Origin: Kudoa neothunni | Lineage: Eukaryota; Animalia; Cnidaria | NCBI GenBank assembly: GCA_964304625.1 | Contig: OZ199839.1 | Location: forward strand, 10,465,186-10,529,185 | Direction of reading: 5' to 3' | Length of the DNA: 64,000 nt | Shown here: piece by piece, positions 486-64,000 of the stretch | Layout of the letters: every line of letters begins with the position of its first letter | Numbering within the stretch: the first letter of the stretch is position 1 | Notes under the pieces: generated by a model | Databases searched by the model: none | What the model saw: the letters and a program-made list of their open reading frames with translations, nothing else | What the model was told of the DNA's origin: nothing | Made by a program: the position numbers and the translations under genes

Positions 486-543
486 ATGGATAAAATTATT
501 ATTTTTTTTACAATATTGATGTACAACGTGAAGAAAATTTCAC
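486..543 (+). other. Signal-peptide-like first coding exon (MDKIIIFFTILMYNVKKIS; MDKIIIFFTILIYSVKEIS in B and C)
   Basis: ATG, basic residue, hydrophobic core and a phase-1 GT donor; 58 nt in all three copies (18369-18426, 49423-49480). Confidence 0.7.
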
Positions 544-3500
544 GTAAATAAAATCAAACAATTTATCAATAATATGGATATACTTCTCAATAATTTTTAT
601 AAATTCTTACTATTTCGTTAGTTGATCCAACAAAATCTTGTGATCTTACTGCAAAATACAAATATGGTCTGGATATAATTGAATTAAGTTTGATACTACC
701 TGCACCTAAAGAAACGATCGAAGCAAGTTGGCAACTTAGTCACAGTGTTACTGGAAGAGTAGTCAAATATTCCAGAAATAGTTCATTAGGATGTGTATCA
801 AAATACTGCAAAATTCTCATGTTTGATGTGGATCGAACACAACCTTATTTTTTCAATATTACAACCAACAAATGTGAAAATATCCCATCCTTAAAAATTG
901 ACAGCGGTAATTATACACACTCTCTTATTAAAACGCAATTCGTTAAAATTACTTAAAGATCCAATGGATATTGACATAGTATATCGTCGAATAACACCAG
1001 CAGACGTAATGTTCGAAAATGAATTATTTTCTTTTAAAAATTTCCATTGCCAACTTTTCAAAATTGATTCATTATACGATTCGAAGAAACTTATTGGAGA
1101 GAATGACTTTGTGGACATTCAAGGAAAAGAAGGAGAGTGCGAAAAAATGATCATAGGACTAAACGAGGGGAAGCTTTATAAATATGCTCTTCGTATAAAA
1201 AATATATCAAATAAAGTTATAGTGAACATCAAAAGTATGTTACTTTTATATATTTTAATATATAAAAGATTTTAAACATAAAAGACAGAATTTTGTTTAA
1301 TGTGCATATTTTATATAGTTTTTTTTCATAATTAATTGTCACGTCGATTACATGTATATGCCATGGGTATTTACTCAATGTGTACCATCTACATTTGTGA
1401 AAAGAGCAAGTTTTAAACAAATATTATTTTAATTTCTATGTTTAAATCGACACAATTAATTTAAAAAAAGAGTAAATAAAATATTTTGATATAATTACAT
1501 TTATAATAAAACTGAAATCATTTAATTATAGAAATAATCAGTTTCATTGCATTTTATATAATGAAAAACAAAATAGATTGTATTAATTTTGTGTTCTATA
1601 TTTAGTTAAAATTAAAAGTACGGATTGAGAATTATGTTAAATTTATTAAAAATTATAACTTAATTATAAATTCAAAATTTTAATATAATCAAAGGGAATG
1701 TGTTATAATTGATATTTAGTAATAAAGATTTAAATTAATATTTGATTAATTAGGTCAGAAGTTCATGATATTGGATTATTAGATGACGCTTTATAGTATA
1801 AAGAATCGCCAAACGTTAGAAATAAGAATTTGTAAATAATTTTAGTATGGTCCAAATTTTCAAATAATAATAGAAATAATTATTAAAAAAATTTTTAAAA
1901 ATAAGCACATCAACATTTAACAGCTGGTAATTATACCACTACGAAATATGTAGGGCAAAGGTGTATTAATTTGGACAATAAAAATGAATCGTAGCAAGTT
2001 ATCATCGAGGTATATAGTTATTGTTATTTTTGGATCTCTCTAAAATTATCGGAATTTCAACTGCGATTATCATAGTCGTTAAAAGGATATTTAAAAGAAA
2101 AGTTTAATTTAGTTCTTACAAGTTGATTGAAAAAATCAATATATTTTTTACACTCTAAAAATGTTTTTCTACGATAAGATATTCTCAGTTCCGTGCGATG
2201 CTGGACAATTCGCGCTAATTGAAACAACAATAAACATCTCTCTGCGGCTAACGTTTGTATAGAAAATTTCTGAAATAATTATACATGTATAAGTTAATAT
2301 TTTACAAATATTTTTCGAATTTATAGAAATAATTTTAGTTTTGAATTTATAGATCATTTAATTTTAACAAAAATCACTCCAATGTAACGATCTCCCAGCA
2401 AATATTAAACCTATTTTTTTACTAAGGCAACATTATTTTCATGTAATAAATATACCATGGTGTAGGCTTAATTTACAAAAATCTACTAATAATATTGCAA
2501 AATACACAAATATTGTAAAATTAAACTTAACATTATTTTATACAATATTTTAATAGAAAATTTTAGATGAATTTTCTCTAGATTTTTCAGTCGTAATATC
2601 ACAATTTTAACATAAATGACTTACTAACAATTGTGCACTTGCTTTTGGGGAAAAAATTTTTAATTTGTTTAGTTTCCTATAATAAATGCTGGAATGTTTA
2701 TTTTTTTTATTTTTTTATAGAGGAACATCCAATGAAAAACTTTATAGAGAATGGTGGATTTGTTTTCTATGTAGCTTCAATTGATGTCGAGAATTCACAA
2801 TACAGCCTCTCATTCTTTCTAATCCATCGATATACCTTCTCATATCCTATTTTCATAAGACAGTGTAAGGAAGCAACTGGTAGTGATTTAGGTTTTAGAC
2901 TTCCAAATAAATCAGAAATGTTTTTTATTGTTAAATTTAATGAACAAAAATATGAACCACAACAATTTTTCATTGGTAAATCCCCCTCATAAATTACGAA
3001 AAATCAATTTTCATTTATTTAGAATTATCATCCGATGATTTTTCAAAATTTGAAACATTAGATCATGTTATTATTAAGTTGATTAAAAACGATAAAGCCG
3101 AGGAAATAAGTTATACCGTTGAGGAAAATGAGAATAAAAAGATTATCAATGTATTCAAATGTCACAATATGGATCGATCCGGTTGTATTGGTTATAAAAA
3201 CGATGATGGATCATACCTTTTTGAAAAAAATCTCAAAAAATCATATAAAATACACATTCAAACAACTGAACCAAAAGAACATTCGTTTCAGATTCATTGG
3301 AGTAAGATATCAATATTATAAACAATAACTGTTAACTTTTCAAATGAATCAACACTCTAAGTATTGTAACTTATTTTATCGATATTATTAAATTATCTGA
3401 AATATAAGTATTTTCCCTTTTATATGACCCAATATCTTTGTTGTTTAACTGATTGGTGATTTGAAATAATGTAAATTAAATGTAAAGATTGTACCTTTAT

Positions 3501-6500
3501 TGAGTTAAAGTGTTACATTCAAAATCGATTTAAAAAGTTTTTAAATCACATTACAAAATGATGTTCTATACAAGATAAATTGATTAAATACGAACATGAA
3601 ATTATTATTATTAAGTTATCCAGATATAGTAAAATTGAAATTTTTGATAAAAATCTACAAATATGATAAAATTATTTTATTATTTTTTTATATGAGTCAT
3701 TATTTTGTTATACCATGAATCTTTAAAGAAAACCTAAATTTGGACATTATACATTTTAGCTAATGAAAGCAACCCAATATTATATGGGAAAATATATGAT
3801 TAGAAACGTACAATTTTAAAAATATTTGAAATTTTAATTAACATACAATAGGTAACCGATGTTTCGTAATTACTTCAGGACCGTCCAAAAAATGCGAAAA
3901 ATCGCTTACATACTCTAATTTAAAAATTAAATTGGCGCATCTATTGATATAGATTTGCATAATCGCTATTTCACACTGTTGATTGACATCAGATCTAAAA
4001 TCCTCCCATCTATCTCCACTTTGAAATAATTTTTTAAAATTAACATTTTCTAATTTTTATCACTTTAATATCAAACTTTTGATAAATTTAAATTTTAGAT
4101 CCTCACAATATTACTTTCCATCATTACATTGAGTCTGACATTTTACATATTTGGTCTAATATAAAAGATGAGTGGGGACTGTTGTGTGATTATTATATGA
4201 TCAGAATGAATGAGGTCGGCGAAGAATATAATAATGCGGCTACATACAACGCTTACGATGGAACAAACAAAAATAATTTCAAATCATGCTCAAAGCACTC
4301 TATACCAATTACAAATGTTGTTCCACACACATTATTCATTTGGATTCCTGAATTAAACTATATAGATCAAATTAGAAATTGTATTTATTATTTGAAGGTC
4401 ACCATATTTAAAAAATGACTAATAAATTTCCTAGTGTATGAAGAATCTCAAATTATTATTGAAAGCAACACGAACACCTTTAATTTAAAATCAAAAGACG
4501 GATTTCTGACCGATAAGATGTGTAATTTTAAAATTAATGATCAAGAGTCAACTGTATTTGGACAATGCGAAAAAACACAAATTCCAAACCCTGCAGAAAG
4601 TGACAGCTGGACAGTTAATATTCATATTCTAGATTCGGAAATATATTTGGTGAAGAACGTAATACTTGGTAACTATATTATTAAATTTTATTAAAGTACA
4701 ACATTTTTAGAACAATCTAATGAAAACATTAATGTTAATACCAACCATGAAATGATGCAACTAACTCTTACAGAAACAATAAATCAACAGGATATATCAA
4801 AAATTGAAATTAACAAAATTAGAAATCAAAAAATTGGTGGATTAATTTTTGGTTATAACAAAAATGGAAATGATAACAAAATAACTTTAATACCGGATTC
4901 AAATATTCTCTCTATACCATATGTATTTGATCCTCATATTTTTATAAAAATCAAAAAATCTGATGAAACCGTAATTTCGAAAGTGATAAATATTGGTATT
5001 TTACATTATATAAATATATTCTTTTATGGTGATTAATAGGTTTCCCTAAACAGTCCTACAAGTTTTCATATGAATCAAATGATGTCAGCGTTATACCAGA
5101 AAGAAAATATACAGATGGAAAAGTTTGTAGATTTAGTGTAAAAACTGCAAATATTGATAAGTTGTCAAATGCAAAAGTATATTACGGTGATTGTTCTAGA
5201 AGTATTCAGTTTCGTGACCTGAAAAAAAACAGTCATTTAACTGTTACACACGATGGCCAAACATTGTACAATGGGTCTTTTTATGTTGGTAGAAATCTGA
5301 TCGAAGGAATACACTACGAATTAGGAATGATTAAAATTATGCACAACCTGGATGTAATCAATGAAAATAATTGCCAATATTCTTTTTCGTCCAAAAATTC
5401 CGACGAAAAAGATTTTAGCGTTTCAGCCAGTTGCAATGGAAACAATTCAGATTGTACATCAACCATAAAGAATAATGGACCATCATTTGATATCGAAAGA
5501 AACAAACATTACAAATACGATTTGACTTGCGGTGAATATACGGATAGCATTGAATACGGCCCCAGTAATATGTTCTATTAAAGAATGAAATATTCTGAAA
5601 TGTTTTTTAGTCCCAATATCTTCTGTTTGGAGATATACGTGGGATGGTACTATTTTAACCTTTTACAGCTCACTTGAAGAGATTGGCTCATCAGATGTCA
5701 AGTGCACCTACGAATTGTTTGCGTTCAATTACAACAACAACAACAAAAATAAAATCGCAAGTGAAGATTCTATAAAATGTGATAAAATTTCGTATAATAC
5801 CTCAGAAATTCCAAATATAAATGAAGTTAATGAAATAATCCTGGAGGTAAAAATTGTTGGAAATCAAAACACTGACTCCTACAAAATAAGTATATACATT
5901 TATGACTCATTGATGAATTGTAGAATTTAGACGAACTTAATTTTTATTAAATGATATATTTTACATAGGACGTGGTGATATCAACAATTTTCACGTTGTA
6001 GAGGGTGAATATGCTAGGAATAGAATAAAGAATCTGTTCAAAAGTTCTTATCAAAAAGATGAAATAGCGGATGCATGGTATTCAAGCAGGATTAATGAGG
6101 GAATCGTAGAGTGGTATTTTAACAGATCAAAGGATTACGATGTTCAGTCTGATGAAAATAATCAAATCATACTGTATCATAAAAATTATTTGGTCCATAT
6201 TTCGTCCATTGAAACTTTTACATATCCACATTACATGAAATTCTATTATCCTGAAAAAGAGAACGTGATTTAAAATATATTCAATTAAAATATAACTAAA
6301 ATATGATGTAGGAAAATGTTATCCACAAGCAAGTTAAAGATGGATTAAACTCAAAAATCACACATTATTTTCAAAAGGGCGACCTCACCAAAGAAAGAAT
6401 TCAAATCGAGACTTATCAGAATTATACATTTATTCCCTCGGCCCATGTTACAGTTGGCTCTAATTGTGATCATGAAAAATGCGAAGATTCATCCTGGGAA

Positions 6501-9500
6501 GCATTAGAACATGTCATAAAGCCAGACGAAGTGGTGAAAATTTGTTTTGTTAAAGACGGCAATGCTCTATATTGTAAAATATTTCAATCAGGTATTTGAA
6601 AAGTTTCGAAATTTTTTTATCTATTTGTTTGATTGGGTACATTTAAATTGAGTACTTTTTTTGTAATATGTCAATTATAGTTATCAATAATTGAAAAAAA
6701 ATAGTCGAGTAATTTTAATAGCATAAATTTATATGATCCAACATTAAACTTCTTAAACCAGGTTCTTCAATATATTCAAATAATATTATTTTTTATATTC
6801 GTCTAATAATATATTTTAGTAAAATTAATTATATTTAGATCTTCAATTCAACAAAATGAGATTATTATCCTACACGATCGATGACGTATCGATTGAAGTA
6901 TCAATTGATCCAAATATTGAACTGAAATGCACTTACATGTTCCAACTCAAAAATAAAATATACGAGCAAGTCTCTTGTTCTTGTGATAACAAATCAGCTC
7001 TTACCATTACTTGTTCCACCTATAATGTGGTTATATCCAATTCACAAGATAACAATTATTACTATGCTGAAATCCATAATAAAGAAGAAGTAATCGGCCC
7101 ATCGAGACTTCCATTCAGTAAAAAACTAGGTTAGTAAATATTTCATCATTATAAAAAATTTTTATATTACATAATAGCTATAAAGAAAAAAATTGATTAC
7201 CTCACTGTTGGTAATAGTGATAAATCGTTAGTTTTGAAAAATGCTAACAAATATTGCTACTTGGAAGGAAATTTAGAGGATGATACAATAAATTTTAACA
7301 AAAATACATGTTTTGAAATTAGCAAAGAAAGGTGCTCGGGCGATTCTAATTGTGATTATATTTCAGTAAATGTTTCCGAAAATGACGATATAATTTCTGT
7401 CGGTGACAAGTCAATCAGTAATGCAATGTTTAGAGATTGTAACCATAATATGTGAAAATTTGTTCAATAATTATTATTTGTAGCGGTTTCCAAAACAACT
7501 GAAACTGAACCTATTCTATTATACACTAGAACTATCTATTTTGATCATGCGTTATATTTGACTGGTGTGAGCATAAATAACACTCCAGACCAATTTACTA
7601 AGACAATTTTAATAACGGTTCCAACCAACGAAAACAAACTTGCCGAAACAAGTGTGGAAATCAACATAAAATGTGTTGACTACTTTTGTGTTGGAGGACG
7701 TAGCGACATTGATAGGTATCACCAAAAAGATATAATAGTTTCCTTAGAAAATAAACGAATTACAACAAGAACCGGAATATGTAATTATTTTTTGTTTTTA
7801 TTTCATAAATTAGTGAAATAGGTGAATTTAAGTACGATGTTCGGATATTCTTCGATAATAATTCTGTATCTTATACTTTCATTCTTGACGTCAATGTGGA
7901 CAACCTCAAAATAAAAATATCTTATATTACAGAAAATTTCGTTACGTGTTCTGCTGGTTTATTTAATGAGCTGCAATGCGATAAGGGAATTTGCAAATTG
8001 AGAGAAGAGATTCCGAAAAATTGTGGTCGATTTAAGTATGCTGATATATACGTGAATAACTTCGAAATTCCGCGCCGAGTTTCTGCAGGTAAATTATTTA
8101 TCTACCTATGGGCTTTAATAATATAAATAAATGTGATAATTTCTATCTTAAAGGAATTAATGTAAAAAAATTATAAAAAAATAAATACTTATTATAATGC
8201 GTCATATTTCATGCCCGAAAATGAAAAATAACATAGGTAACTGGTTTCGCGCACTATTTTAGTAAGCAAGAAATAAGTGCGTCCAAATGGTCACACCCGG
8301 TTCTGCACACTCGTTATACGCACGAAGAATATTGGAAAATTTACTTTCTATTGACATGTATTCATTAAAAAATGTTTTCTTATAATTCAATAATTAAAGA
8401 TAAATATATTATTTTATAAATGTAAACAATAATAAATTTATACGAGAAAAATATTTTGTTATTTTAGTTGGTTTCATATGTTTGAAAGAATCCTGAATAT
8501 CGACTCTTCTGTTGTCCTCAAATAATATTATTATTATTGTCATGCATCTTAAAAAATAATTTTAACCCTTCTAAATATTCTAAAGTCCCTTTAACCTGAT
8601 AATTTTTTTGCTGAGGAATTCACCTTCACTGAGTGTAACACAACATCAATATAAATCTTAATGATTTAACTGAAAATAAAAATATCGAATATTTAGCTAG
8701 TGTCTAGTATTTGATCATTTCGGTCATGTCGTTAGTAATCGAATTATCAGCAACTTTTTCATCATTAACAACTAATAAATTATCCTGCGTTGGGTCAGGT
8801 CTTAGAGAGGAAATTCTACTTGTTTAGACACTTTGTAACTGTATATTTAGAAACTTTCCTCAAGTTTTTTAATTAAACACATTGTTTCTTAAACGTTCGG
8901 AGGAGTTAGATCTATTCACATTTCAGCACAAGAAATGAAACTGTCATTGACTTATTGCGGAATAATTTGAGGAAATGGATGATCCCCTGGTCCAACGACT
9001 GAAAACCGCTAATAGTGTTCTTAGGGGAAATGCTAATTTAACGTTCGAAAAATCTTTTCGTTATTTAATAAAATTATCGTTAATTTTTTAAATGTCTCCT
9101 AAGATAACATCCTTAACCATGTAATCCTTTTTGTAAGATTCGAATAAAAGCGCTCTTCTTAATATTTTTTAAGAAACGTACTTTATTATTGGGCCAAATT
9201 AACAATAGATCCAGCTGTTCTCAAATTAAAAACTCTCCTTATAAAATAAAAAAATTTTGGATTTTTTAATCCTTGTTGTATTGTTTTCGGGTAAAGAAAC
9301 AAACTACAAAGGTTGACGGACGACATGTAATACTTTGAATTCTGGGAAAAATGCGAATTAGATAAAAATGCGTTAAAATTCTTGTATTTATTGTATTTTT
9401 GTCAGAAAATTGTTTTGAAGGCGTAAAAACTCAATTGAATTAATTTTATAAACTTGGGCTTATGTAATGCGCTCGACAAGCAGTAAATTCTGTATGAAGT

Positions 9501-12500
9501 AGCAAGGTGCGTATTAGCAATAATCCGTTGTATTATCTTAAAAATTACCATAAAATAGAATTATCAATATTTGCTACAATAATTTCGATAGAGCTAACCC
9601 ACTTCATCAATAATCTAAATATATCCTCCGAATATCTCCCACAAGGCGTTCTAATTTTAGATATCCATTCATCAGTAATTTTGAGACAGGCATCGCCAGA
9701 TTAGTCATAAAAACTGACTTATTTAATATTTTATCTTGTTTAAGAGAAACTATCCAGGGGTTGCAATTGATGCCGATTTCTTACGTTGAGCAAACTCACT
9801 TCTTTATAAATAAGGATCGTAATTTTTGATTATAATCGATTTTAGTCGTCGATTTTTTGAAGGTAAACGTCAAAACTACGATCCTTATTTATAAATAATA
9901 TTCGCGGCACTCAGTTAGATCTTTTTGTTGCTTGTTTGACAGATTCATTCGCATACATCTTTAATGAGATTATTATATACCTCAGTATTAAAATATTTCT
10001 TTTTTTATAGTATAAATCATCTTCATAAATTTGAAATAATTTTCTCTCAGCCTTAACTCTTTAAAGTCGTAAATGAAGATAAATTAACATTCTTGGTGGT
10101 AACGGCTTTCGCACCTTTGGGTGGAAGACTATCATAATATTTTTTATCATTTTTCTGTTATAATTTTGATTCTTACTACCATTCCAATTATTGAAACAGA
10201 CAACAACGAAATTATTAACAAATTCAGTTCTAATGAAGTTCCTGAACTGACAATCATGTGGCATACTTATGTTATTTAACACCTTTATAATTTTAATTTT
10301 TAATATAAACCGATAAAGCTGACTTAAAAGGACGTTATTAAATGAACATTTCGCCGTTTAGCCGAAATAAGTATCATTAAGAAATGCTTGACAACAATTA
10401 CCTACTGCAGACATGAAAATCGATTAATATTCTATATGTTAACAAACTCTAAGATCAAGTTTATCAACCTTCCAGTATAAACCAATAATACTTTTATCAA
10501 ATAATGGTTTAAATTATTTTCTTTAATTTAAAATAAAAATTTTTTATGTATATATATATATAGGTCAAAGAAAAGAAACATTGGTGGATTATTCGCCAGA
10601 CAGCGGAAACTTGAAAATAAAACTTAGGCTGTTAGAGAAAGCTAGCTCTGATATATCAAATACATATATAGTTAAACAAGGAGTTGAAGCTGAACAGAAA
10701 ACACAATTAGGCCTAGATGATTGCAATGAGGGAGTTTGTACCATCACATTAACCGGCATTGACCCCAAAAAGGAGTTTGCGATTAGACGTGAATATGAAT
10801 CCCCATATAAATATGGATATTACTTACTGATAAGTAAGATATGAATTTTTTAAATCTTTGTTATTTTTCGACTATAGAAAATTACTCCTATGATTATGAA
10901 TATTCTAATGAAGGAAATAACATGAAAATAATGCTTATAATTAAGGAGAACGTCGATCCAATTATTATCAGTGGTTATAAAATTTTTTGCACGAGTATGA
11001 AAAACATTTTAAAATCGAGTGATGTCTCCGAACAAATTAGTTGTCAAGATAATAAATGTGAATTAGTCATCAATGATATTACTCTTACAGAAGATTGTTA
11101 TATTAGTATTTCATCTGAAATGCTTATTCCCCGAGATTTATCACTCAAAGGACGTAAGAATTATTGCGAGAAATATTCGAAAGTTATTAATTAAATTAAT
11201 TTAGCTTCTAGTCTGCTTAATGTCATGTCATCCACAAAAAATGTGGAAGAATTTACCGTTAGTTACAATTTGAAATTGAGAAAACATCTTACCAAGCTAT
11301 CATTTGAAATGAAATATACATCAAAAACTGACGACATCGCAGCTATTACAAAAAGTGGGGAAATGTCTTGTGAAAAGGGAATATGCAATATAAACATTAA
11401 ATTGAACGATTATTATTATCCTGGTACATTAACCTTATCATCGAAAATGCTCTCCGATTCTTACTCACATGATTTTTCTCCGCGTAAATCAAAATAACTG
11501 TGTATATATTGTTTCATATTCAAATTTTTAGCAAAGACAACATGTGAAATTAATCATGACATTAATGGATCAAAATTAACTATCACTTTTACACTTGAAA
11601 AACCATATAATTTGTTTCCGGCTAACGTGGAAGCCTCTTGCAGTGTCGATAAACGCTACAACGAATTTAATAATAAGAATATTCCAGTGGAAATAATCAA
11701 ATGCGATAACAAAAGATGTGAAACTACGTTTGCTTATGATTACTCAAAAGATTGTATTATTAGAGTGAACTCAGTAATATTTTCCAAAGAAAAATCTATC
11801 CAGATTGATAAAGGTAGATGTTTTTTAAGCTATAATCATTAAACTTTTTTAATAATAATTTTACAATAATTGAATATGTTAATGTATTTAGGAATATACC
11901 CTTATGATATTGCATATATTGAAGAAGGAAAAAACTTAAAGATTATGTTCATAATGGATAGAGAATTTGATAAAATTAATCTTGATAGTTACAAATTAAC
12001 GAAAGAAGATAATTCAACCATGATATCTTCCAGTGAATCCGCCAAAGAAATTACATGTGATAAAAATATTTGTGAGTTTACGATAAACAATGGCATTGCC
12101 GAGGATGACAGCTACCTTACATTTACTTCAAATATACTCATTCAAAAAACATTCAAAATATCTGGATGTATATATATTTATAATTGTTTGTTTCAAACGA
12201 AAACCATTTTAATCCTTAAATTAATTTAGCATCAAAAAAATTGGAAGTTATCTCGTTTTCTGGAGTAACTGATGGATTAGTTGTTAAGCTTAGTTGGAAA
12301 TTACGAAAGTACGTTCCATCGATACAATTAGGTATAGAATACCAAGTAAACAACATCAAAGAAAATTCTAACCTCGTTGAACCTAAAAATGAAGTTAACT
12401 GCAAAGAGGGTGTATGCACCATTGAATTTCCAATGAATGATTATTATTATCCGATAACAATATCTGTAACATCCGAAAAATTTTCTGTAGCCTATTCCCA

Positions 12501-15270: not shown

Positions 15271-15582
15271 TTCCCCTTTGGATACTTATTATAGTTATTT
15301 AACTAAACTAATATATTAGTTTGTCTTATATATTTCGATCTATTTTGATTAATGATTAGACTTTTTTGGCGTTCTGAATTATTCATTCTTTTTACGATGT
15401 AAACAGTTGATATACAAATTTCTTTTTAGGTTTCTGTTTTTTCAGGTCTTTCCTTGAGTAAATTCTACATAATAACATAGATTCAATCAATTTTTAATTA
15501 AAGATGTAGTACACTGACTTAAACAACAGCAGCCGTTTAACAAATGGATTATTTGACGTGTTTTAAACCTGGTGTTTACGTA
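12840..15582 (+). repeat. Near-identical direct repeat of 38141-40883 (exons 24-33, introns, 3' flank)
   Basis: Constant offset 25301, no indels seen, about ten substitutions by eye (e.g. 13175, 13273, 14413, 14583, 14587, 14641, 14702, 15406, 15477, 15512). Confidence 0.93.
14197..14235 (+). other. GPS autoproteolysis motif and Stachel-like sequence CSCNHT|TSYAVVF (also 39498-39536)
   Basis: Matches the adhesion GPCR consensus C-x-C-x-H-L|T-x-F-A-V-L-M, about 20 aa before TM1. This frame is absent from the ORF track and was recovered by splicing. Confidence 0.88.
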
Positions 15583-46387: not shown

Positions 46388-47621
46388 TGTTAGAATACCT
46401 ATGGGATTCTATTAATACACAATAATTGAATCAATTAAAGATAGATATTATTGGCCATATCAACGGAAAGACATTAAAAATTGGTGTGAATCGTGTCCGG
46501 AATGTGCAATTAGAAATAGACCAACCAGAAAGTTTATATCTCAAATTGATACAAATAACTCAAGCTATCCAATGGAAAGAATAGCAATAGATATTGTGGG
46601 ACCTCTTGAGAAGAGCAATAAAGGCAATAAATTCATTTGTGTTGTTCAGGATTATTTTACAAAATGGGCCGAAGCTTTCGCATTGAAAAACCAAGAAGCG
46701 ATTACGGTCAGCAACAAACTTATTAAAAACGTGTTTTCTAGATTTGGGATTCCTAAATTTATTCATACTGATCAAGGAACCAATTATGAATCCAACTTGT
46801 TTCACAATATGTGTAATCTAATGGGAATTAAAAAGACTAGAACATGTCCATATAATCCAAAATCTGATGGAATGGTTGAGCGTTTAAATAGAACGATTGG
46901 AGATATGTTGAGTAAATGTGCAAAACAATATAATGATTAGGACGAAATGCTTCCCTTGGTTATGATGGCATACAGATCAGCGACCCATACTGCAACTAAA
47001 TATACACCTAATTTTATGATGCTTGGTAGAGAAATTTTTTCACCTATTGATACGATTTTTGGAAATTCTAAAACATTTAATAATTTCGACAATCACGCTA
47101 AATATCTTAGAACAAACATAAAAATGGTTCACAAATTAGCAAGTGAACATTTGTAAGTTTACCATGACAAATTCAAAAACACTTATAACAAGAAAACATA
47201 CGGTAAAATATACAATGTTGGTGATAAGGTTTGGCTAGCTGTCAACATAAGGAGGAATAAACTTGATCCTTATTATGAAGGACCGTATGTGGTCAAACAA
47301 AGAATTTCAAATTCGCTCTATCAACTTGATCAAAATGGAAAGAATATAGTAATTAATTTTGATAATTATAACCCTTTATATAGAGAACAACTGAAACAAA
47401 CGTTAACTCAAATTATGGAATTGATGTGCTGGGCAAGAAGAGGGAGTAGTGTTAGAATACCTATGGGATTCTATTAATACAAAATAATGACCTTTAATTA
47501 TCAAGCATTAGAATCCTCAAGATAGTAGTTAATTACTTTATTATATATATAAACTACTATTATCTCGAGGAAGATTACTGTTGTATTTTTGATCATAGTG
47601 TTATGAATAATAGTTGCAACA
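46388..47621 (+). mobile_element. Internally deleted Ty3/Gypsy LTR retrotransposon (integrase pseudogene, PPT, 172-bp 3' LTR 47450-47621)
   Basis: RYYWP...CESCPEC zinc-binding half; IAIDIVGPL, IHTDQGTNYES, PKSDGMVERLNRT core; PPT aagaagagggag; LTR TGTT...AACA; first ~31 nt of the LTR repeated at 46388; ATAT TSD on both sides. Confidence 0.92.
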
Positions 47622-47833
47622 ATATTAACATATATCTTCATTGATAGTCCACATTACAGATTTTATTTTATTGTGTGCGAGTCTTTCTGACAATCGTCGA
47701 TGAATTGCCCCAAACTGCAGTTTAGCCTCAATTATAATTACAAAAGGACTTTCGTAAAAGAATTGGCTAAAATAATTAGAGCTGAACGGAGGAAATTAAG
47801 CAGCTCTATCGTTTATAATTATTAGTGAATATT

Positions 47834-52400: not shown

Positions 52401-55400
52401 TCAAAATATTGTATCTTGATTTTAATAAAAATTTTAATGATTTAGGGTTAAAGTATATTTTTTATTTTTATATGGTTAAATGTTGGAATTGTTTTAATTG
52501 ATTATTTAGATTTGAATTACGTAAACTCAGTTTAAAAATTGAACCTCAATTGATTTAAAATATTACGTTTAAAATAGATTACGAAGGTCCAAAATCACAA
52601 TACAAAATTTAATTTTATGAAAACAAAATATATAAAACGGATGGATGAAATTAATATTAATATTATTATTTAAATAAATCCAAATGGATTTTTTGATAAA
52701 AAAACATAAATATACTCTTATCGTTTAATTGTTATCGTATTTGGTTCATTATTTTTTTGTTATGGACTTTAAATGAAAAACTATGTTTGGACAGTATACA
52801 TGTTAGCTAATAGAAGTTTATCAGAAGATACACAGTCGTTCCACTGTATTGCGTAATACAGTAGTGCATGGGTCGTAAACAATATTGCTTCAACGCAATT
52901 TTCAAAAATTTACTTGTTTACTACTTATTTTTGTTTAATTCGAACTTAAATAGATTGTTATATACAAAATGGACTATTTGTCAATAAATAATTTGTTTCA
53001 CCAACATTTTAGTGTATAAAACTTACTGTATGCATCTAACGGAAAAATGGCTCGGGTGCAGCGATTAATTTGAACTTTGCAAAAAATAATGGATGGATCG
53101 TCAATTTTTGCGAAACAAAACCACTTTACACTAACAAAAAACTCGAAATTATAAGGTTTTACGAGTTCATATCATATAATAAAGATGCCAATTTCCATAC
53201 GACGGAAATATTTGTCAATATAATGGCACGATAATAATAAGGTCTGAATGACTAGTTCCATTTTAGTGTCTATTATTGAAAAATAGAATAGGAGACTCAC
53301 TATTTATAAGGGAAAATTCTTTATTATTTCTCGACTATTTATTAATCCCCTACAAAAATATTTGCTTATGTAACATTGCTACTTTCCTTCTAACACAACC
53401 AATGTGCTATAGCCACTAGATCATGGAATTGTCAAAGTTTTAAATGATGCATAAAACAAATCTAATAACTTTATTCATTCAGCGATCAAATTATGGGAAT
53501 ACATTAAAACGGAAACCATAGTTAGCTGCTTTATGAAATCCACTAGATGATGATTCCGACGATGTTCAATTTAATCCTCCCGGGATGGAGGGGGTGCATT
53601 TTGCACCCCAATTTTTGTATTTTTAAAAATTTCACCATTATAGAATTATATCTTGACCTTATACTCAGCAAAATCTATCAATATAATTCACTGTTTTATT
53701 CGAAAAATTCGGAATATTCAGTTTTGAAAGGGATTGACTTAATATAACTCTTTGAAAAAGAAGACTAACGTCAACCTGAAATATCATTAAAAAGATACGC
53801 AATGATTATTATACGATAAACAATTATTTTTCACATTAATAATACTCAATAAGATCGAAATAAAATCTGTAGGAATCTAAAGAAATCATACTTTTAATTT
53901 GAGCCGACAGAATCGGATGGGCGATGAGATTACTTTTGGATAAATTTAAGATATACGCGATTAGTAATTTTGTTATTTGGGGTTTGCATGTACGTAAATT
54001 TTTCTATCGTCAACAGGTTTCCATGATAGTGCAATTGAGTGATCATATAAAAACGACTCAAATTATTAATGATTATAATCAAATCAAAAAAGGTTTGGCA
54101 GTGGTGATCGAGTGGCACAACGATACGGTTTTGTTTGTATAACGAGAAGATGACACTTCAGGTGGTTTATGGACCTTACCGATGTACCAACACTTAGCGC
54201 TTGTATAATATATGTATCATCATTTCCAGAGTGATGAACAAGTGATCGAAATCGGTGATAATATTTTCTTCGAGAACTTGCGGTGAAATTCATCAAATCA
54301 AATATTTTGAATCGTCGAAGTTTATGAAATATTCATTATTCTCATATTAAAATTAGATTTATATTATTTAACAAATACATCAGGGACGACCCAACATCTA
54401 TTTCTAAAGAAATAATTTTAATCCTAGTACAGTGAAGATACACTAACTGTTCAAGGAATATTGCCAAAAGGACCAAAATTTTACACTAAATATTAAAAAA
54501 ACTGTATGTCGTTCCCATTAAATTAAAACAAGAATTTAGAACATCCCAATTGCAATTTGAAATCAAACTTTTGTTCATTAAATAATTTAACCTTGATATA
54601 TCTAATTAAATTACGGACTACTTTTGAGGTAAGCATTCTTCGAATGTAAGATATTCATTTATATGGAGAATATGACGAAATCTACTGAGCAAAAAAAATT
54701 ATACTTTATTCAAAATTATTATAATTAATATATACAAGTTTTTTAATTGACATATTTATTCGTGTACTTTTTATTTTGTGTTAAAAACTCAATTAAACTA
54801 ATACAGAAACAGTCAACAATAAAGTGATATGTTGTGAGGGGTAATAATGCAAAAAACTCAAAATTTCTTTATTTCTATAGTTCAGTTAAGTGTATGTATA
54901 CACACATAATTGATTTCATTTTGTCTTCATTATGTCTAAATAGTGAATATTTTTTCTTATCCAATTATTAAATTGAAAATTATATTTAAAAGGTAATTTT
55001 CCGATTAAAAAAGAAATTCTTCCCAAACTAATCTCAATATTCATCTAAGGGATTAACAAGAATAATCGATAATCCACAACCACTGAGTTTGCTGGCAGTA
55101 CGATAGGGTTGCGAAAAAAACATTGAAGCTGAATGTTGACTCCTCTAAGAGTTCATTTGGAGTTTTATTTTGTTGCGAAATATACTCCTGTCGAATATAT
55201 AGCTGATTCGTCGTTTCTTCGTGAATTATGATTATCAGCTAAATGCGTGTTTCTTACTATATAACTAAATTATTTTTAATTTTGTGTTGTTTTTTACGGT
55301 TAAAATAATTGCCAAGCATATGAATTGACGTGTTCCAACACATAAGTGCAATAACATGGAAATTTTCTGAGGTGCATAATGCACCCGTGTTAGTTTATAC

Positions 55401-58400
55401 AGCTCCATCTTCCAAGGGTTAAGAAGGTTAAGATATAATTATTCATTAAGAATGTTTTCTGCATGTTGGTATTTAAAATCATCCAAAACTTATGAAGAAA
55501 GAAATAATAACTTCGACCGTCATAAAATTGGATGTGTGAATTGCATTTTTTAAAATTTATTGTTGACAGAAATCATTATTATTATCATCACATTTCCTAA
55601 ATAAGTTGTTTCGACGAATTAAAGTCAAGGATCGACTAGATCATGCCACTAGCTATTGACACGGAAGTTTTTAATCCGAAATGGCAACAACGCTTGCGCA
55701 CTGTCCATTTTTAATCCCAGTAACTTCTATTTATAGTCGATTTATAAAGTCCTTTTTTTAGAATCTGCTGTATTTAATGATACCTACCTGGATATTATGA
55801 TCCATGTCAATAGCCATTTTCCCTATAATTAATCGCACTTAATCCATACATCATTGTTATAAAAAAATTTGTTGTTATTAATATACTTTTGAAAATAAAT
55901 GTATACTTTATGACAAATAAGAGAGACTACATTGCAACAGCCCACATTAAAACTTTTATTTGTTCACTTGCGCCATGACGGCTCGAGTGTATTTAACGGG
56001 TCGTGGGCACCTTGAACCCAATTCCCATTTTAATGTCCACGACCCGTCACCTACTGTATATCATGTTTCATACGTGTGTCTTTTGCTTTTTCTTTCCCAG
56101 CCAAACCTTGATAAACACAAATCTGTTAATCCTTGAATTCATAAAATTAGATTTAAAAGAAAAATTTATCGAAAATTACTTAGGAAGGAACATCTTTCTA
56201 GATGCACAAGACGATTAAGTTTACCTTTAATTCTCAACTTTTAAAGTTTTAATAAATCTAACAAGGTGGTTGTACCATTATTAAACAGTTAGATCACGGA
56301 CAACATGAAAAATTATAGAATTTTGATTTAATTCTTAAAAGAACAATCCACCTATTTGAAACGAGAATTCTCAATATGATACAAATCAAAATGAAAATGA
56401 CCACATCACGTATGTATTAAACATGGAGAAACTGAAGAATGTTATCTCAGAAATACGCTGAACATTTTAACTTAAGACCCAAATGGAGTGAATGATTTCT
56501 ACCCAGTGATGAATAGGATATTTAATATTGTAAAATATACATAGAAATGTATTTTTGTACCAATTTTTTTTCGGAAAATAAATGTTAATTAGTTCGTTTT
56601 AAAGAAAATAATTGAGTTTAATATTTCATGCGTTCGCTATTTGATGGATATTATTCACAGAATATGCATTGCGTACCTTTTTGTAATTATTCCAAAGAGT
56701 GCGCAATAACCGTTGTTGATTGTATGTGGAGTAAACGGATCCGTTGCAATAGCCGACGTCTTTTTATTTTTAATTTTTTGTAGATCAAAAATAAGACATG
56801 TTTAATTAAATTTTAGACCCGCACAATATTACTTTCCATCATTACGTTGATTCTGACTTTCTACATATTTGGTCAAATATAAAAGATGAATGGGGACTGT
56901 TGTGTGATTATTATATGATCAGGATGAGTAATGTCACCGAAGATTTTAATAATGCAGCTACATACAACTCTTACGATGCAGCAAACAAAATTAATCTCAA
57001 ATCATGCTCAAGACACTCTATACCAATAAAAGATTACTTTCCACACACACTATTCATTTGGATTCCTGAATTGAACCATCTTGATCAAATTAGGAATTGT
57101 AATTATCATTTAAGGACCTCTTTATTATAAAAATAAACTAAAAATTAACTAGTGTATGAAGAAACCAAAATTATTGCCAAAATCGGAATGAATAATTTTA
57201 GCTTAAAATCAGAAGATGGATTTCTGACTAATAAGATGTGTACATTTAAAATTATTGGTCAAGAGTCACCTGAATTTGGAAAATGCGACGAAAAACAAAT
57301 TTCTGTTCCAGAGAATAGTGACAGCTTGACAGTTAGTATTGATATTATAGGTTCGGAAATAAATATGGTAAAGAATGTAATACTTGGTAACTATGCTATT
57401 GAATTTTCCTAACATAAAATTATCTTTTTAGAACGATCTGATCAGAAAATTAATGTTGATATTGACCATGATATGATTCGATTAACTATTCCAGAAACAA
57501 TAAATAAAAATGATATATCAAAAATTGAAATCAAAAGTTTTAGAAATCAAAAAATTGGTGATAACATTTTTGTCTATGACAAAAGTGAGAATAATAAAAT
57601 AACGTTAGCATCGGATTCGAATATTCTCTCTATACCATATGTATTTGATCCTCAGATTTTTGTAAAAATTATAAAATCTGATAACACCGTGGTTTCCAAA
57701 GTGATAAATATTGGTATTTTTCATTTCATTGATATAATATTCTATTACACTGATAAATAGGTTTCCCTAAACAGTCTTACAGGTTTTCATATGAATCAAA
57801 TACTGTCACTATCATACCAGAAAGAATATATATAGAAGGAGAAATTTGTAGATTTACTGTTAAAACTAAAAATATTGATACGGCGTCAAATTCAAAAATA
57901 TATTATGATGATTGTTCCAGCAGTATTCAGCTTCACGACCTGGACAAAAATAATGATTTAATTGTGACACATGAAGGCCAAACTTTATACAATGGGTCTT
58001 TCAATGTTGGTAGAAATCTAATAGAAGGAATACATTACGAATCAGGAAAGATTAAAGTTATACATGATCTGAGTGTAATTAAAGAAAATAATTGTCGATA
58101 TTCTCTTTGGTCCAAAAATTCTGAGAACGAAAATTTTATCCTTTCAGACAGTTGTGGTGAGAACGGTTTGGATTGTACACTATCTATAAGGAATAACGGA
58201 CCGTCATTTGATATTCAAAGAAACAAATACTACAAATATGATTTGACATGTGGTAAACATATGGATAGTGTTGAATACGGCCCCAGTAATATATTATATT
58301 AAGAATTAAAATATTCGTAAACATTTTTTAGTCCCAATAGCTTCTGTTTGGAGATATACGTGGTCTGGAAACACTTTAACCTTTCACAGCTCATTTGAAG

Positions 58401-60817
58401 AACACGTCCCATCAGATATCAAGTGTACCTATCAATTGTTTACGCTCAATTACGACGACGACGACGACGACAGAAAAGAAATCGCGAAAAGTACAGGCAC
58501 TATGACATGTGATAATATTTCATATGACACAAATCAAATAAAGAATGTAAACGAAGTTAAAGAAATAATATTGGAGGTAAAAATTGATGGAAATCAAAAC
58601 ACTGACTCCTTCATAATAAGTATATACATTTATGACTTATTGAGGAATTTTAGAATTTAGTCGAACTTAATTTTTATTAAATGATAAATTTTACATAGGA
58701 CGTGGTGATACCAACAATTTTCAATTTGTAGAAGGCGACTATGCTAGAGATAGAATAAAAAATCTATTTAAAAGTTCTTATGACAAGGATGTAATAATGG
58801 ACGCCTGGTATTCAAGCAAGATTAATGAGGGAATCGTTGAGTGGCAATTTAACGCAGTGGATTATGACGCTCAGGATGATTGCAATAAGCAAAAAATATT
58901 GTATCAAGAAAATTATTTGGTCCATATTTCGTTCACAGGTTCTATTATGTATCCACATTACATGAAATTCTATTATCCTGAAAAAGATAACGTAATTAAA
59001 AACACATACAATTAAAAAATAACTATAATACAATTTAGGAAAATGTTTCACACAAACAAATTAAAGATGGCATAAACTCGAAAATCAGGCTTTGTTTTAA
59101 AAAAGACGAATTCAACAATGATGAAATCAAAATTTCAACTTATCAGAATTATACGTTTATTCCCGTGAACCTAGCTCTAGAAGATTCTATTCGTGATACT
59201 GAGGCATGTGAGGATTCGTCCATGCAAGCAGTAAAACACATCATAAAGCCAGACGAAGTGGTGAAAATTTGTATTGTTCGTGGTGATAATGCTTCATATT
59301 GCAAAATATTGAAATCAGGTATATAATAAATTTTGAAATTTAATATCTATTCGTTGGATTTGATATATTTTCAGTGAAAATTTTTATCATAAAGATTCAA
59401 TTATAATGCTTTACATTCGAAAATAAACAACCGTGTAATATTGAATGAATAATTTTTTTCTCTCAAATTTAAAACTCTTAAAATTACATAATTCAATATT
59501 ATTAAAAATGTTAATTCGTATATAAATTTAATAATTTATAATAATAAAATTTATTTAATTATATTTAGATCTTCAATTCAACAAAATGAAATTATTATCT
59601 TATACAATCGATGAAGTTTCCATAGAAGTATCAATGGACCAATCTGTTCCGCTTCATTGCAATTACACGTTCCAACTAAAAAATAAAATATACGAGAAAG
59701 TCTCATGTCGTTGTGATAATGAATCAAAGATTATTATTACTTGTTCCACTTATAATGTGGCTATATCTAATTCACAAGATGGCAATTATTACTATGCTGA
59801 AATCTATAACAAAGAAGAAATATTAGGTCCAGCAAGGCTTCCATTTAGTAAAAAACTAGGTTAGTCAATATTATGTCAGTATAAAAATTTTATAATAAAT
59901 ATTAGCCATAAAGAAAAATATTGATTACCTTACAGTTGGTAATAATGATAAAGCGTTAATTTTAAAAAATGAAGATAATTATTGCTACTTTACCAGAAAT
60001 TTAGAAGGTGGAACTATAAATTTTACGAAAAATATATGTTTTGAAACTAGTGGAACAAAATGTTCCAACGATTCTGGTTGTAATCCAGTTTCAGTAAATA
60101 ATTCCGAAATTGGCAATATAGTTTCTATCGGTAACAATCTATCCAATATTGCAATATTTGGTGAAAGTAATTATATTATATGAAAATTTATTCAATAATT
60201 TTTATTTGTAGCGGTTTTCACCGAAAATACAGTCGAACCTAATCTATTATACGCAAGAACCATCTATTTAGATCATGTGTTATATTTGACAGGCATTCAA
60301 ATAAGTACCACTCCAAACCAATTGACTAAGACGGTTGTAATAACAGCTCCAAACAATAAAAACCAACCTACTGAATCAAGTGCTGAAATCAACCTAAAAT
60401 GTGTTGACTACTTTTGCGTTGGGGTAGTTAGTGACATCGATAGGTATCAACAAAATGAAGTAAAAGTTTCCTTAGAAAATAGACAAATTTCGACCAAACC
60501 CGAAATATGTAATATCCGTTTGTTGTTTGTTCTATACATGAATGAAATAGGTGAGTTTAAATACGATGTTCGAGTATTCTTGGATGATAATTCTATATCA
60601 TATACTTTTATTATTGACGTCGATGTAAAAAAAATCAAAGTAAAAATATCTTATATCAAAGAAGATTTCACTGTATGTTCTGCTGGCCAATTTAAAGAAT
60701 TAATTTGCACAATGGGAATTTGCAAATTGGATGAGCAAATTCCTACAGTATGTAATTCATTTAACTATGCCGATATACACGTGAATAATTTTGAAACTCC
60801 GCGTCGAGTTTCTAAAG
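49423..60817 (+). CDS. Giant adhesion-type GPCR, copy C (5' part, exons 1-16; probably continues beyond the window)
   Basis: Exons 49423-49480, 49560-49844, 49898-50173, 51766-52020, 52068-52346, 56817-57098, 57153-57386, 57432-57713, 57761-58285, 58332-58619, 58699-58991, 59039-59318, 59569-59859, 59906-60166, 60212-60508, 60551-60817. Intron 16 (homologous to copy B intron 16) runs to the window end. The 7TM is inferred only from paralogy. Confidence 0.85.
52833..53570 (+). mobile_element. pogo/Tigger-like remnant in copy C intron 5
   Basis: YFPSNTTNVL*PLDHGIVKVL near 53380-53445; cagtcg...ttgcgtaa left end similar to the element at 21825. Confidence 0.65.
53575..55418 (+). mobile_element. 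Internally deleted piggyBac element in copy C intron 5
   Basis: TTAA on both sides; terminal and subterminal inverted repeats (cct...gatggag; gggtgcattttgcacc / ggtgcataatgcaccc); fragments TQIINDYNQIKKGLAVV and FRWFMDL...ACIIY. Confidence 0.78.
58454..58471 (+). repeat. Coding (GAC)6 microsatellite in copy C exon 10
   Basis: Encodes D6; the aligned position is (AAC)4 in copy A (5733-5744) and AAT(AAC)3 in copy B. Confidence 0.85.
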
Positions 60818-61555
60818 GTAAATTATTTATCTATCTAAGGAATTTAATATTATTGGTAAATAAGAGAATTTCTGCCTTATTTTAAATTTCCTTATTTAAT
60901 ATCCTAAAAAGAAAAATGACACTATTTTTTTTTCTCAAAAATTGAATAGCAAATTTCCTTTCCTAATATTATAAATTAAATCTACCCCTAATGTTACTAC
61001 TAAATGAATAAAAATTTGAATATAAAAAACCATATAAAATTCTTGGTTTGAATCTACGCATTGATTAATTATATGAACCAATTTCCGTCTTATAAAAAAG
61101 GAACATTTGATGTATTCCAATGAATTGTTCATATTATTAAAATATTTCTTCTTTCCGTCTAATTTAAGATACAGTTGCATTAAGTGAATTTCAGCATAAT
61201 TAGAACACGGATTTATCGATTTTCAGACGCCCTAATATTCTAGGATGAGTGCTCAAAATATTATGAGCAACAAATATGGCACATTTACTTAATAAGACTA
61301 TCAATTACAACAGGTTGGACAATACGTTTGTATTATTTTCCGGCCAGACGATGTATGGGATTATCCTTAAAGCTTGCAGGGCACATTAGAAATAATTTTA
61401 TTATTAAATAGCTCTCTTTGAGTCAAAAATAATTAGACGGGTGAATTATACCTATGAAAGTTTTTAAGGATGGCAGAGTATCAATATCCGAATTGTTTGC
61501 AATTATTGAGAATCATAGGATTCGATTAAAGTAAAAAAATGTTATTGATTCAGAT

Positions 61556-62580
61556 CAGGAGCCTTCAAAGTGATTGATATCGACCCTTTGTGGGTCAATG
61601 AAAACTTCTAGGGGATCGATAATTACGCTAGGGATCGAATGGGGGTGGATATGTGTTATAGAGATTCCGCCGAATTTTATGGGCTTTTAAGGTAATGCTT
61701 CCCATCTTCCTACTATATTATTTAATTATATTAATTAATACTATCCCGTGACATTTTTTTTTTATTTTTGAGTTAAAATCAAACGTCATATTTCCTAGTT
61801 ATGTAATTCAATGTTTTTCATTTATGTAGAGATACTTTGCAACTCATAAAAACTAGTGAATACATTGGCTTTATTTTTCTTAAATATTAATGTTCATCGA
61901 TACTCGTTGTTATTAGCAATTTATATAACAATAATGATTGTTTATATTAAGTTTATAATCGACTAATATAGATTTTAATCGTAATTACAAAAGCTAAGAA
62001 AATAAACATAATAATAAATCTGAAAATGTCGATTTAACCCCTGCGAACACTTCAAAAACTCTTTAAGCTCCCTCAAGCTAAGGAATATAATCTTAGGGTA
62101 AAGATTAAGACATTCTTATTAACTTTCAGAGATAGCCAGGAATAAATATTAACTTTTCTACATATATGTAATTTAATCATAAAATCTGCTGATGTATTCA
62201 TACATGTGCAAAAGTATGTAACTATAATCATATACAAGCAACCTAATGTGGTAGGCCAATTGAATATGATTTATGATGAAAAATGGATTAATTATGGTAA
62301 ATTTTCTAATATAGTTGTTTTTTTGCAATGATTGGATTATAAATATCAGCGTAAATCTACAAATTTCAAGAATTTTTCTGATATATTTTGATGTTATATC
62401 GTTAATAAAAGCTATTTTGGGGGTTAATATAATTTTGCATTGTATTATGTATTCGAAATAGAATATTAATGGGATATACTGCACATATTTTTAATTGTTC
62501 TAGTCAAAAAATGAATATAAACTAATATTTTAATAAAATCTTTGAAAGGGGTCGGTGAAAAAAAAGTTTGAAGACTTCTG
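61556..62580. mobile_element. Non-autonomous hAT-type element in copy C intron 16 (same insertion as 32521-33497)
   Basis: Perfect 8-bp TSD attcagat at 61548-61555 and 62581-62588; CAG...CTG termini. Confidence 0.82.
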
Positions 62581-64000
62581 ATTCAGATGGATTATTTGAC
62601 CTTAAAAAATTTCATTACAAAATATCACGGAATGGGAGAGTTATAATATAAATCTCAATGCGTACTTTAATAAATCTTTTTAATCACTGAAATATCATAT
62701 TCCTTCATTTTTTGTCCACACGAGAAAGAGCTCATCGACAATAGATGAATTTCGTATTAAGGAAGTCATTCATCTGACAACACACGACGTAATAAATTAA
62801 TTATGGCTTCAATCTTATTTTCTACAAAGTCTAATATCAGAATATTTACAGTTTTAACTTTTAATGCGAGGATAGTAATATAAAGTCAAACATCAAGAGA
62901 ATAATGTGCATATATAATGAACCTAGCTTCATGGTTATAGACGAAATTATGTTTATTGTAAATTTTTTGAATTTGGATGAGTTAGAATATAATGCTCCTG
63001 TAAAAGGCAGATAGTGATTAATTGGAATCGAATTAATATAGTGGGCAAACATTCTTATTTACGCTCTATAATGATTTTTCCATTAAATCAAAAAATTTTG
63101 CTTTTAATTAGCAGAATAATTAAGTTTTATATATAATTGATAGACACCCCTATGTCTCCTCTGTATGTCTTAATGAATTACCGAAACGCCTCGATAATTA
63201 GCCTTTAAAATTGGATTCACTTTACAAAAAAAACAAAATAAAGAATAGTTGGATGTTATTACTATTTCTCTAGAACTTTTTAATATAATAGCTTCACCTT
63301 TACATGTCATCTTGTATTTGTATCTTAACTGTTATTAATCTGTACTCTTTATTTTTAACATCTAAATTATTTACGAAAATGTCTGAGAAAAAAAATTGTT
63401 ACAGTCGATGAAATGACGGCTTAAATTGAAAAAAAACGGTAATTAAGAGAAAAAATGTTTGGTTTCGTGTGTTCCTATTGAAACTGCAATTTCTCATTGC
63501 GATAATTCGATTGGTGTACTTTCTTATGAATGAAATAAAGAATACTCTGCTAAGATGTTTAAACTTTTAGTCTGCAAGTTATTTACAGCAGGGGCGATAT
63601 CGTACTATAACAAATTAAAAATTTATTATTTCTCAGTGTTCTATTTTTTATTAAAAATCTTTTAATCTATGAGCATAGAATTATGTATTATTTAAATTAA
63701 TCAATTTACGAAGCCACCTCGTCTTACTGTTTCAAATTAATTATTATAGTAGTGGTTATTGGCTCGGTAAGTAATATTAGGATGTCATTAGTTTTGCCTA
63801 TATTTAATTATTTTTTGTCATAAGAACGAAGCTACGGGCCCAGAATAATTAAATATCGCAGATACTCAAAAATTAAATCTGTATACAGGTTGTGATTGAG
63901 AGTTGTTGAGATTATAAATCTCCACCTCACAAGCGTATACGTCGTTTAGGATTAAAATATAACGTTCCAATAGCATCTACTATACTTAATATTTAAATTA

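Follow-up and report, generated by a model that had tools for sequence, protein, structure and literature searches.

A probable young tandem family of giant adhesion receptor genes in Kudoa neothunni and the homogenisation of its 3' halves

Genes and receptor architecture

The window studied here is the whole stretch of 64,000 nucleotides (nt) of Kudoa neothunni DNA (assembly GCA_964304625.1, contig OZ199839.1, positions 10,465,186 to 10,529,185 of the forward strand). It holds two complete genes, A and B, and the first part of a third, C, which follow one another head to tail and appear to encode giant adhesion GPCRs (G protein-coupled receptors) with long ectodomains of repeated modules. We think it likely that these copies form a young, lineage-specific tandem adhesion GPCR family in an AT-rich, fast-evolving animal genome, and that their 3' halves were homogenised by recent gene conversion.

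Comparison of the window with itself revealed the three copies at offsets of about 17.9 kb and 31 kb. The G+C content of the window is 24-33%, and the + strand, read from stop to stop, consists of open blocks of about 100 codons with gaps of about 45 nt between them; such strings point to a many-exon eukaryotic gene. The model of copy A was built from splice sites conserved across the copies, from the continuity of the frame and from a direct reading of exon 1 and of the seven-transmembrane (7TM) exons. The gene models are as follows.

486-15270, + strand: copy A, 31 exons, 2733 amino acids (aa), single terminal stop
486-543, 622-906, 959-1234, 2721-2975, 3023-3301, 4099-4380, 4435-4668, 4711-4995, + strand: copy A, exons 1-8
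5040-5564, 5611-5889, 5969-6264, 6312-6591, 6839-7129, 7178-7438, 7484-7780, 7822-8088, + strand: copy A, exons 9-16
10564-10833, 10878-11153, 11205-11483, 11532-11813, 11892-12167, 12230-12514, 12568-12849, + strand: copy A, exons 17-23
12894-13166, 13439-13532, 13576-13713, 13757-14043, 14117-14366, 14421-14680, 14726-14792, 14838-15270, + strand: copy A, exons 24-31
18369-40571, + strand: copy B, the same 31 exons, 2729 aa, open frame, introns 3, 5 and 16 enlarged
49423-64000, + strand: copy C as far as the window reaches, exons 1-16 and most of intron 16
64952-69657 in window-equivalent positions, past the window's end: copy C, exons 17-31; the whole model has 31 exons, 2734 aa and an open frame

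A search with the last exon brought up a fourth paralog, D, which is also intact. It lies on the minus strand of another contig (C1), codes for 2734 aa and shares 76-83% identity with A, B and C over the full length of the gene. When the four copies were mapped exon by exon, AG/GT borders were present at all 30 introns in each, and their exons differ in length only by multiples of 3. Two donor sites in copy A are ambiguous (5531 or 5564; 7117 or 7129). The earlier note on this DNA, written from the letters of the stretch, had described three apparently intact head-to-tail paralogs, and the frames of 2733, 2729 and 2734 aa in A, B and C agree with this. Its claim of a common exon architecture also stands, with the number of exons revised from 33 to 31 in the present model. 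Its two protein comparisons were reproduced: A and B share exactly 46 of 85 residues in exon 4 (2721-2975) and 599 of 600 over exons 24-31 (12894-15270), where the sole change is the serine/proline difference at 14641 (T in A, C in B and C).

Intron 15 is 42 nt long, in frame and free of stops in B (31478-31519) and C (60509-60550), and 41 nt long in A. The reading frame of B is continuous through it (31168-31851), and its retention would add 14 residues. Two readings of the copies were tried and rejected: haplotype duplication, since the copies differ in 13-22% of their protein sequence and in transposon content, and pseudogenes, since all frames are intact.

Domain searches were run exon by exon. 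Exon 1 codes for a short hydrophobic N-terminus (MDKIIIFFTILM...), which we read as a signal peptide. In copy A the parts that follow are these.

622-13166, + strand: ectodomain, about 24 predicted beta-sandwich modules of about 90 aa (exons 2-24), mostly one phase-1/phase-1 exon each
13439-14366, + strand: exon 25, an acidic linker rich in Thr/Pro, then in exons 26-28 the presumed GAIN region, read from the translation, ending in the GPS and the first transmembrane segment (TM1)
14197-14217, + strand: GPS core C-S-C-N-H-T/T, with the presumed cleavage point between 14214 and 14215
14117-15270, + strand: 7TM region, exons 28-31, then about 45 aa of cytoplasmic tail and, at 15268-15270, the stop codon

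The GPS family PF01825 was matched at 25.9 bits (cut-off 22.5) on 14095-14367 in a single-exon Pfam scan. The underlying pattern is ...W...C...CSCNHT/TSYAVVF, in which the slash marks the presumed cleavage point and is followed by the Stachel-like TSYAVVFDF; the GPS core is identical in A, B, C and D. PMC13062082 gives the canonical GPS cleavage motif as H-X-S/T, and the sequence of the four copies fits this pattern. For GPS autoproteolysis and activation by a tethered agonist, which may take place here, the sequence motif is present. The single exons 26-28, about 200 aa between linker and GPS, gave no Pfam match upstream of the GPS.

Seven hydrophobic segments come after the GPS. The last exon matches 7tm_2 (PF00002) at 22.2 bits (cut-off 20.6) over profile positions 156-249, and it is the only exon to match this profile, the exon holding TM2-3 giving no 7tm_2 match when scanned alone. 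Against solved structures the last exon finds almost nothing other than adhesion GPCRs (ADGRE5, F1, D1, G2), all weakly, the best being ADGRE5 with an E of 1e-3. Two sequence hallmarks, GPS and 7tm_2, mark the genes A, B, C and D as adhesion GPCRs. The identification made in the earlier note is borne out by these two scores above the Pfam cut-offs together with the seven hydrophobic segments.

The modules of the ectodomain follow the exons closely, except that exon 9 holds two of them and exons 11 and 12 are joined across a phase-0 intron. The eight C-terminal modules form a super-repeat of three module types. A C-x4-C cysteine pair is invariant in the C-terminal-type modules that were aligned (25 of 25) and is present in many ectodomain modules. 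A Pfam scan of six of the 23 module exons gave no family match, fn3 included, so that the modules scanned show no sequence match that would place them in the fn3 family, and no HRM, EGF, cadherin or lectin domains were seen in the exons scanned. When a HMMER profile of 25 modules was searched against 1.84 billion representative proteins, nothing fell below an E of 1e-10, and six weak matches were left. Five of them are repeat or FN3 proteins or low-complexity sequence, with a tenascin match at 1e-5. The sixth is an 82-aa fragment on the environmental contig ERZ4740346 NODE_3735 (ENA; 1154 nt, 26% G+C), which has at 347-873 two consecutive module-like open frames with the C-x4-C motifs ECVEGIC and LCKNRKC and 20-29% identity. 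To judge from its sequence, this contig is a plausible outside relative of the module, and the only one found. A module query of a language-model protein atlas returned no relative (best score 0.79).

An AlphaFold2 model of the module alignment is all-beta, an eight-strand beta-sandwich with a predicted local distance difference test score (pLDDT) of 80. Foldseek found no match for it in the PDB at E of 0.001 or less. An exhaustive structural aligner placed cytokine-receptor and FN3 domains first, with Z 7-8 and a root-mean-square deviation of 2.5-3.1 over 77-88 residues. The fold of the module is accordingly predicted to be FN3-like in the sense of a common arrangement, which is all that a Z of 7-8 supports. 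The author of the earlier note had not recognised the family as a described one; this agrees with our searches, in that the ectodomain module has no convincing sequence relative outside this genome. Its orphan status may be due in part to a fast-evolving, poorly sampled lineage.

Two other genes give a view of the divergence of this genome. An HSP110-type gene (contig C3) is intronless and at most 35% identical to named animal proteins, with 53% identity to an unnamed transcript; judged by its sequence, this divergence points to a very fast-evolving or unsampled lineage. Since the HSP110 of Hydractinia shows no more than 31% identity, a hydrozoan is an unlikely source. For the HSP70, identity to named proteins does not exceed 78%, and arthropods, rotifers and flatworms are equally close.

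Homogenised tracts and mosaic copies

The near-identity of the 3' halves is a property of the DNA. In a sliding comparison the identity of A and B is about 85% up to about 12840, rises to 99-100% through exons and introns as far as about 15590, and then collapses. The last upstream difference stands at 12839; on the 3' side A equals B up to 15582, and both equal C up to about 15498, so that the tract reaches 230-310 nt beyond the stop codon. Shorter tracts of the same kind, taken as stretches of at least 98% identity with introns included, join pairs of copies elsewhere in the genes.

12840-15582, + strand: homogenised tract, A side, from the end of exon 23 through intron 23, last module, linker, GAIN/GPS and 7TM with their introns into the 3' flank
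38141-40883, + strand: the same tract, B side; B matches C already from 37879
37879-40758, + strand: B = C conversion tract, overlapping the homogenised 3' tract
30656-31536 with 59687-60567, + strand: B = C conversion tract, exons 13-15 and their introns, 6 differences in 880 nt
28483-28763 with 57490-57770, + strand: B = C conversion tract
36560-37100, with the C side beyond the window, + strand: B = C conversion tract
11877-12417, + strand: A = C conversion tract, exons 21-22
1-401, + strand: A = B tract, ahead of the gene

The 2.7-kb tract is about 99.6% identical, introns, synonymous sites and 3' flank included, with about 13 differences among the three copies over about 2.66 kb. The number of synonymous substitutions per site (dS) among A, B and C is 0.005-0.011 in exons 24-31 and 0.22-0.34 in exons 1-23. 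Within the short introns 23-30, only 0-3 of 507 sites differ among the three copies, compared with 78-80 of 491 against D. The 3' constancy is the result of recombinational homogenisation, by interlocus gene conversion or unequal exchange, and is about 50 times younger than the rest of the gene. Because introns, synonymous sites and 3' flank are as identical as the coding sites, it is gene conversion and not selection on the protein that made these halves alike, and the view that the constant part is kept constant by protein selection could not be upheld.

An AATAAA/ATTAAA-type signal is present at 15497 and 40798, about 230 nt after the stop codon, and the identity with C breaks off only a few bases away. 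In this way the likely end of the transcript falls together with one of the tract's edges.

The ectodomain exons have been subject to the same process. The closest pair of copies shifts along the gene: B and C over most exons, A and C in exons 2-3, 18 and 21-22, A and B in exons 10-12. Trees made exon by exon switch topology, and runs of 52-172 identical polymorphic sites occur between two copies where the 99% permutation limit is 16-29. Exons 14-15 are the same in B and C, and exons 20 and 23 almost the same. All copies are thus mosaics, and homogenisation acts on the variable part too. The longest tract, and the only one common to A, B and C, covers the signalling half. The marks of concerted evolution are present together: sharp-edged tracts that take in non-coding sites, a switching tree topology, and a paralog outside the array, D, that is unaffected.

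Identical tracts could also arise in assembly or polishing, if repeat copies were forced to one consensus. The start of the array lends this some support: a 200-N assembly gap (window -199 to 0) abuts window position 1, and the sequence directly after it, 1-412 upstream of A, is 100% identical to 17898-18309 upstream of B. We nevertheless hold such an artefact to be very improbable as the source of the tracts. Inside the tract A has 7 private single-base differences, B has 1 and C has 5, which means that there are three real loci and not one sequence pasted three times. Its flanks are unique, with differing intron and transposon content on either side, the shorter tracts involve other pairs of copies, and polishing is unable to turn about 85% identity into 99.6%. 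An assembly collapse of the constant part, which the earlier note had named as a danger to its case, is likewise disfavoured by the 13 private differences and the unique flanks, which point to three separate loci.

Selection, the wider family and the reading of the array

Nonsynonymous (dN) and synonymous (dS) divergence was estimated pairwise against D, and their ratio omega was also estimated by maximum likelihood (ML) under GY94 with the four sequences.

Exons 1-23, ectodomain: against D dN 0.19-0.21, dS 0.43, omega 0.44-0.48; ML omega 0.45
Exons 24-31, whole constant part: against D dN 0.054, dS 0.35, omega 0.15; ML omega 0.17
Exons 25-28, GAIN region: against D omega 0.21; ML omega 0.22
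Exons 29-31, 7TM: against D omega 0.08-0.09; ML omega 0.11

That the ectodomain evolves faster than the GAIN-7TM part, as had been proposed, is confirmed by these values (ML omega 0.45, versus 0.22 and 0.11 in the GAIN region and the 7TM). Compared with D, the constant part looks like any sequence under ordinary purifying selection. Exon by exon, the ML omega of the ectodomain lies between 0.17 and 0.78, everywhere below 1; the highest pairwise values, 1.04-1.14, belong to single exons with few changes. Framework residues and cysteines of the ectodomain are retained among the copies, and in exon 4 conserved framework segments go with variable patches. By these estimates the net effect of selection on the ectodomain is purifying. 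Neither the gene-wide nor the per-exon ML omega of the four sequences showed positive selection (omega above 1) on the variable part. An ectodomain dN/dS well below 1, which the earlier note had set against its own interpretation, is largely what we obtained.

The speed of the ectodomain could be read as neutral drift in decaying duplicates or incipient pseudogenes, since its dN is 70-90% of the short-intron divergence. We find this highly unlikely. Four frames of 8.2 kb have stayed open in DNA of 28% G+C, where chance alone would place a stop at about 1 in 12 codons, exons vary in length by multiples of 3 without exception, and AG/GT is kept at 30 of 30 introns in each copy. Moreover, omega is clearly below 1 and the cysteine pair and framework residues are conserved.

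The four genes belong to a wider family. The module profile matches 93 places in the genome, clustered beside other 7tm_2 loci, and at least 15 module-bearing 7tm_2 receptor loci, the four close paralogs among them, were found in the 40 Mb examined. Further clusters of module exons beside 7tm_2 last exons lie at the following places.

C2:11.68-11.83 Mb, C2:3.20-3.24 Mb and C1:15.95-16.00 Mb: module-exon clusters beside 7tm_2 last exons
C2:10.37-10.39 Mb, C2:9.60 Mb and C2:6.08-6.10 Mb: module-exon clusters beside 7tm_2 last exons

Their last exons are 34-37% identical to that of the A-D type, and 3' parts within these further clusters are 92-94% identical where 3.4-kb loci were compared. The locus at C2:10369726 carries in-frame stops.

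The earlier note had taken the combination of a constant unit with variable ectodomains as the mark of a recognition or antigenic-variation system. This did not hold up, as the constancy is that of a conversion tract and the ectodomain omega is below 1. A germline-diversified array for recognition, allorecognition or antigenic variation, with ectodomains under diversifying selection and a signalling unit kept constant for one pathway, is in our judgment unlikely, and we find it similarly improbable that gene conversion would serve such an array as a tool that both shuffles the modules and keeps the constant part constant. Several observations are in its favour: the ectodomain changes fast, with an omega of 0.45 and a dN close to intron divergence; framework segments alternate with variable patches in exon 4; the mosaic of conversion tracts looks like segmental shuffling; at least 15 loci, grouped in clusters, make up the wider family; and the longest tract, the sole one common to three copies, spans the signalling half. 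On the other hand, no exon has an ML omega of 1 or more, and a constancy that includes introns and 3' flank needs no selection. The identity of the B and C ectodomains over exons 14-15, and their near-identity over exons 20 and 23, counters diversity, and such homogenisation runs contrary to a system meant to keep ectodomains distinct. The close paralogs, finally, number only four.

A broader form of the idea would take the four close paralogs and at least 11 distant clustered loci as a germline recognition repertoire for self and non-self, symbionts, host or prey surfaces, in which conversion reshuffles modules and resets the signalling half. We regard it as unlikely, together with its corollary that positive selection is confined to a few loop sites invisible to a gene-wide omega.

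We therefore return to a young tandem adhesion GPCR family with gene-converted 3' halves. The encoded protein would have a signal peptide, about 24 FN3-like modules as a long extracellular stalk, a linker, a GPS/GAIN-type autoproteolysis region that includes a sequence resembling a tethered agonist, a class B2 7TM and a short tail. By analogy with other adhesion GPCRs, the ectodomain would bind a partner or matrix, and force would expose the tethered agonist and so activate the 7TM. The contrast between variable and constant parts would have two causes. Purifying selection would act more strongly on GAIN-7TM, with an omega of 0.11-0.22, and less on the modules, where omega is about 0.45, a pattern common to most receptors; and recent interlocus conversion or unequal exchange would have overwritten a block of 2.7 kb in the three tandem copies. 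Shorter ectodomain tracts of like kind would have made every copy a mosaic. Paralog D would have escaped the exchange and would show the true, roughly uniform age of the family.

Several points weigh against this account. The expression, splice sites and isoforms of the copies are deduced from sequence only. The GAIN identity of exons 26-28 is presumed from their position before the GPS. The ectodomain dN (0.16-0.20) at 70-90% of short-intron divergence (0.18-0.25) is unusually fast, and omega from pairs or from four sequences averages over sites and is disturbed by recombination; positive selection may act at a minority of ectodomain loop sites. The copy number may also be understated: as the 200-N gap abuts window position 1, the array may be longer than assembled, and its 5' edge may be misjoined or may lack copies. 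No further copy was found within 10 kb upstream, or within about 14 kb downstream of C.

Between and within the copies lie remnants of mobile elements.

19753-20470, - strand: degraded pogo-like DDE_1 transposase remnant in intron 3 of copy B
41129-41913, + strand: Tc1/mariner-like DDE_3 remnant between B and C, a weak match
43511-44679, - strand: piggyBac-like DDE_Tnp_1_7 remnant between B and C
46416-47474, + strand: integrase remnant of a long terminal repeat (LTR) retrotransposon, with rve, H2C2 and SH3 domains, between B and C

In addition, a 1.5-kb stretch in intron 3 of B (21895-23425) is 79% identical to window-equivalent 70639-72155, just downstream of C, and is probably a dispersed repeat.

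Comparison with known receptor systems

Very large adhesion GPCRs that bear numerous beta-sandwich repeats are familiar, among them ADGRV1/VLGR1 with Calx-beta, CELSR/Flamingo with cadherin and ADGRF5 with Ig repeats. Like these, the A-D genes appear to unite a signal peptide with many tandem beta-sandwich repeats, a GAIN/GPS part and a 7TM of class B2, in a protein several thousand residues long. They differ in that the repeat has no Pfam family or convincing outside relative and that the 7TM is very divergent, with 22 bits to 7tm_2. What is new here is the module and the receptor family; the mechanism and the architecture are not. The array adds to the adhesion GPCRs a lineage-specific subfamily with an ectodomain module repeated about 24-fold and lacking recognisable sequence relatives.

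Partial gene conversion between neighbouring receptor genes has been described before. Concerted evolution by this route is attributed to EMR2, CD97 and EMR3 (ADGRE2, E5 and E3) by Kwakkenbos (2006), in the form in which PMC2720389 cites that work, and gene conversion is known for TLR1 and TLR6 (PMC2720389, PMC2077338). It has been suggested that partial conversion keeps some regions of receptors alike while others diverge (PMC2720389). In both cases, as in A-C, neighbouring receptor paralogs have been homogenised over part of the gene, with mosaic genes as the result. The converted part of EMR2 and CD97 is the ligand-binding EGF region, whereas in A-C the largest tract is the signalling half and smaller tracts lie in the ectodomain. 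The present array illustrates cleanly how partial gene conversion shapes receptor genes that stand in tandem, and it calls for caution: introns and synonymous sites should be checked before the near-identity of a domain among paralogs is read as functional constancy.

Clade-restricted bursts of adhesion GPCRs with unusual ectodomains, to which the at least 15 7tm_2 loci of this genome can be compared, are known from amphioxus (37 genes, with novel N-terminal domain combinations; PMC2246102) and from the sponge Amphimedon (40 or more, mostly sponge-specific; PMC4302439). These expansions use known Pfam domains, whereas the A-D ectodomain consists of about 24 repeats of one orphan module. Should exclusive expression or hypervariability prove true of the family, an animal lineage that has been little studied would offer in it a candidate recognition system.

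The clustered protocadherins splice variable exons to one physical set of shared constant exons. The array resembles them in that, inside one gene cluster, diverse ectodomains are joined to an intracellular or signalling part that is identical; unlike in them, every copy carries constant exons of its own, which are the same only because of recent DNA exchange. If the reading as a repertoire were true, a variable-plus-constant design would have been reached here via DNA exchange, by a route other than protocadherin splicing.

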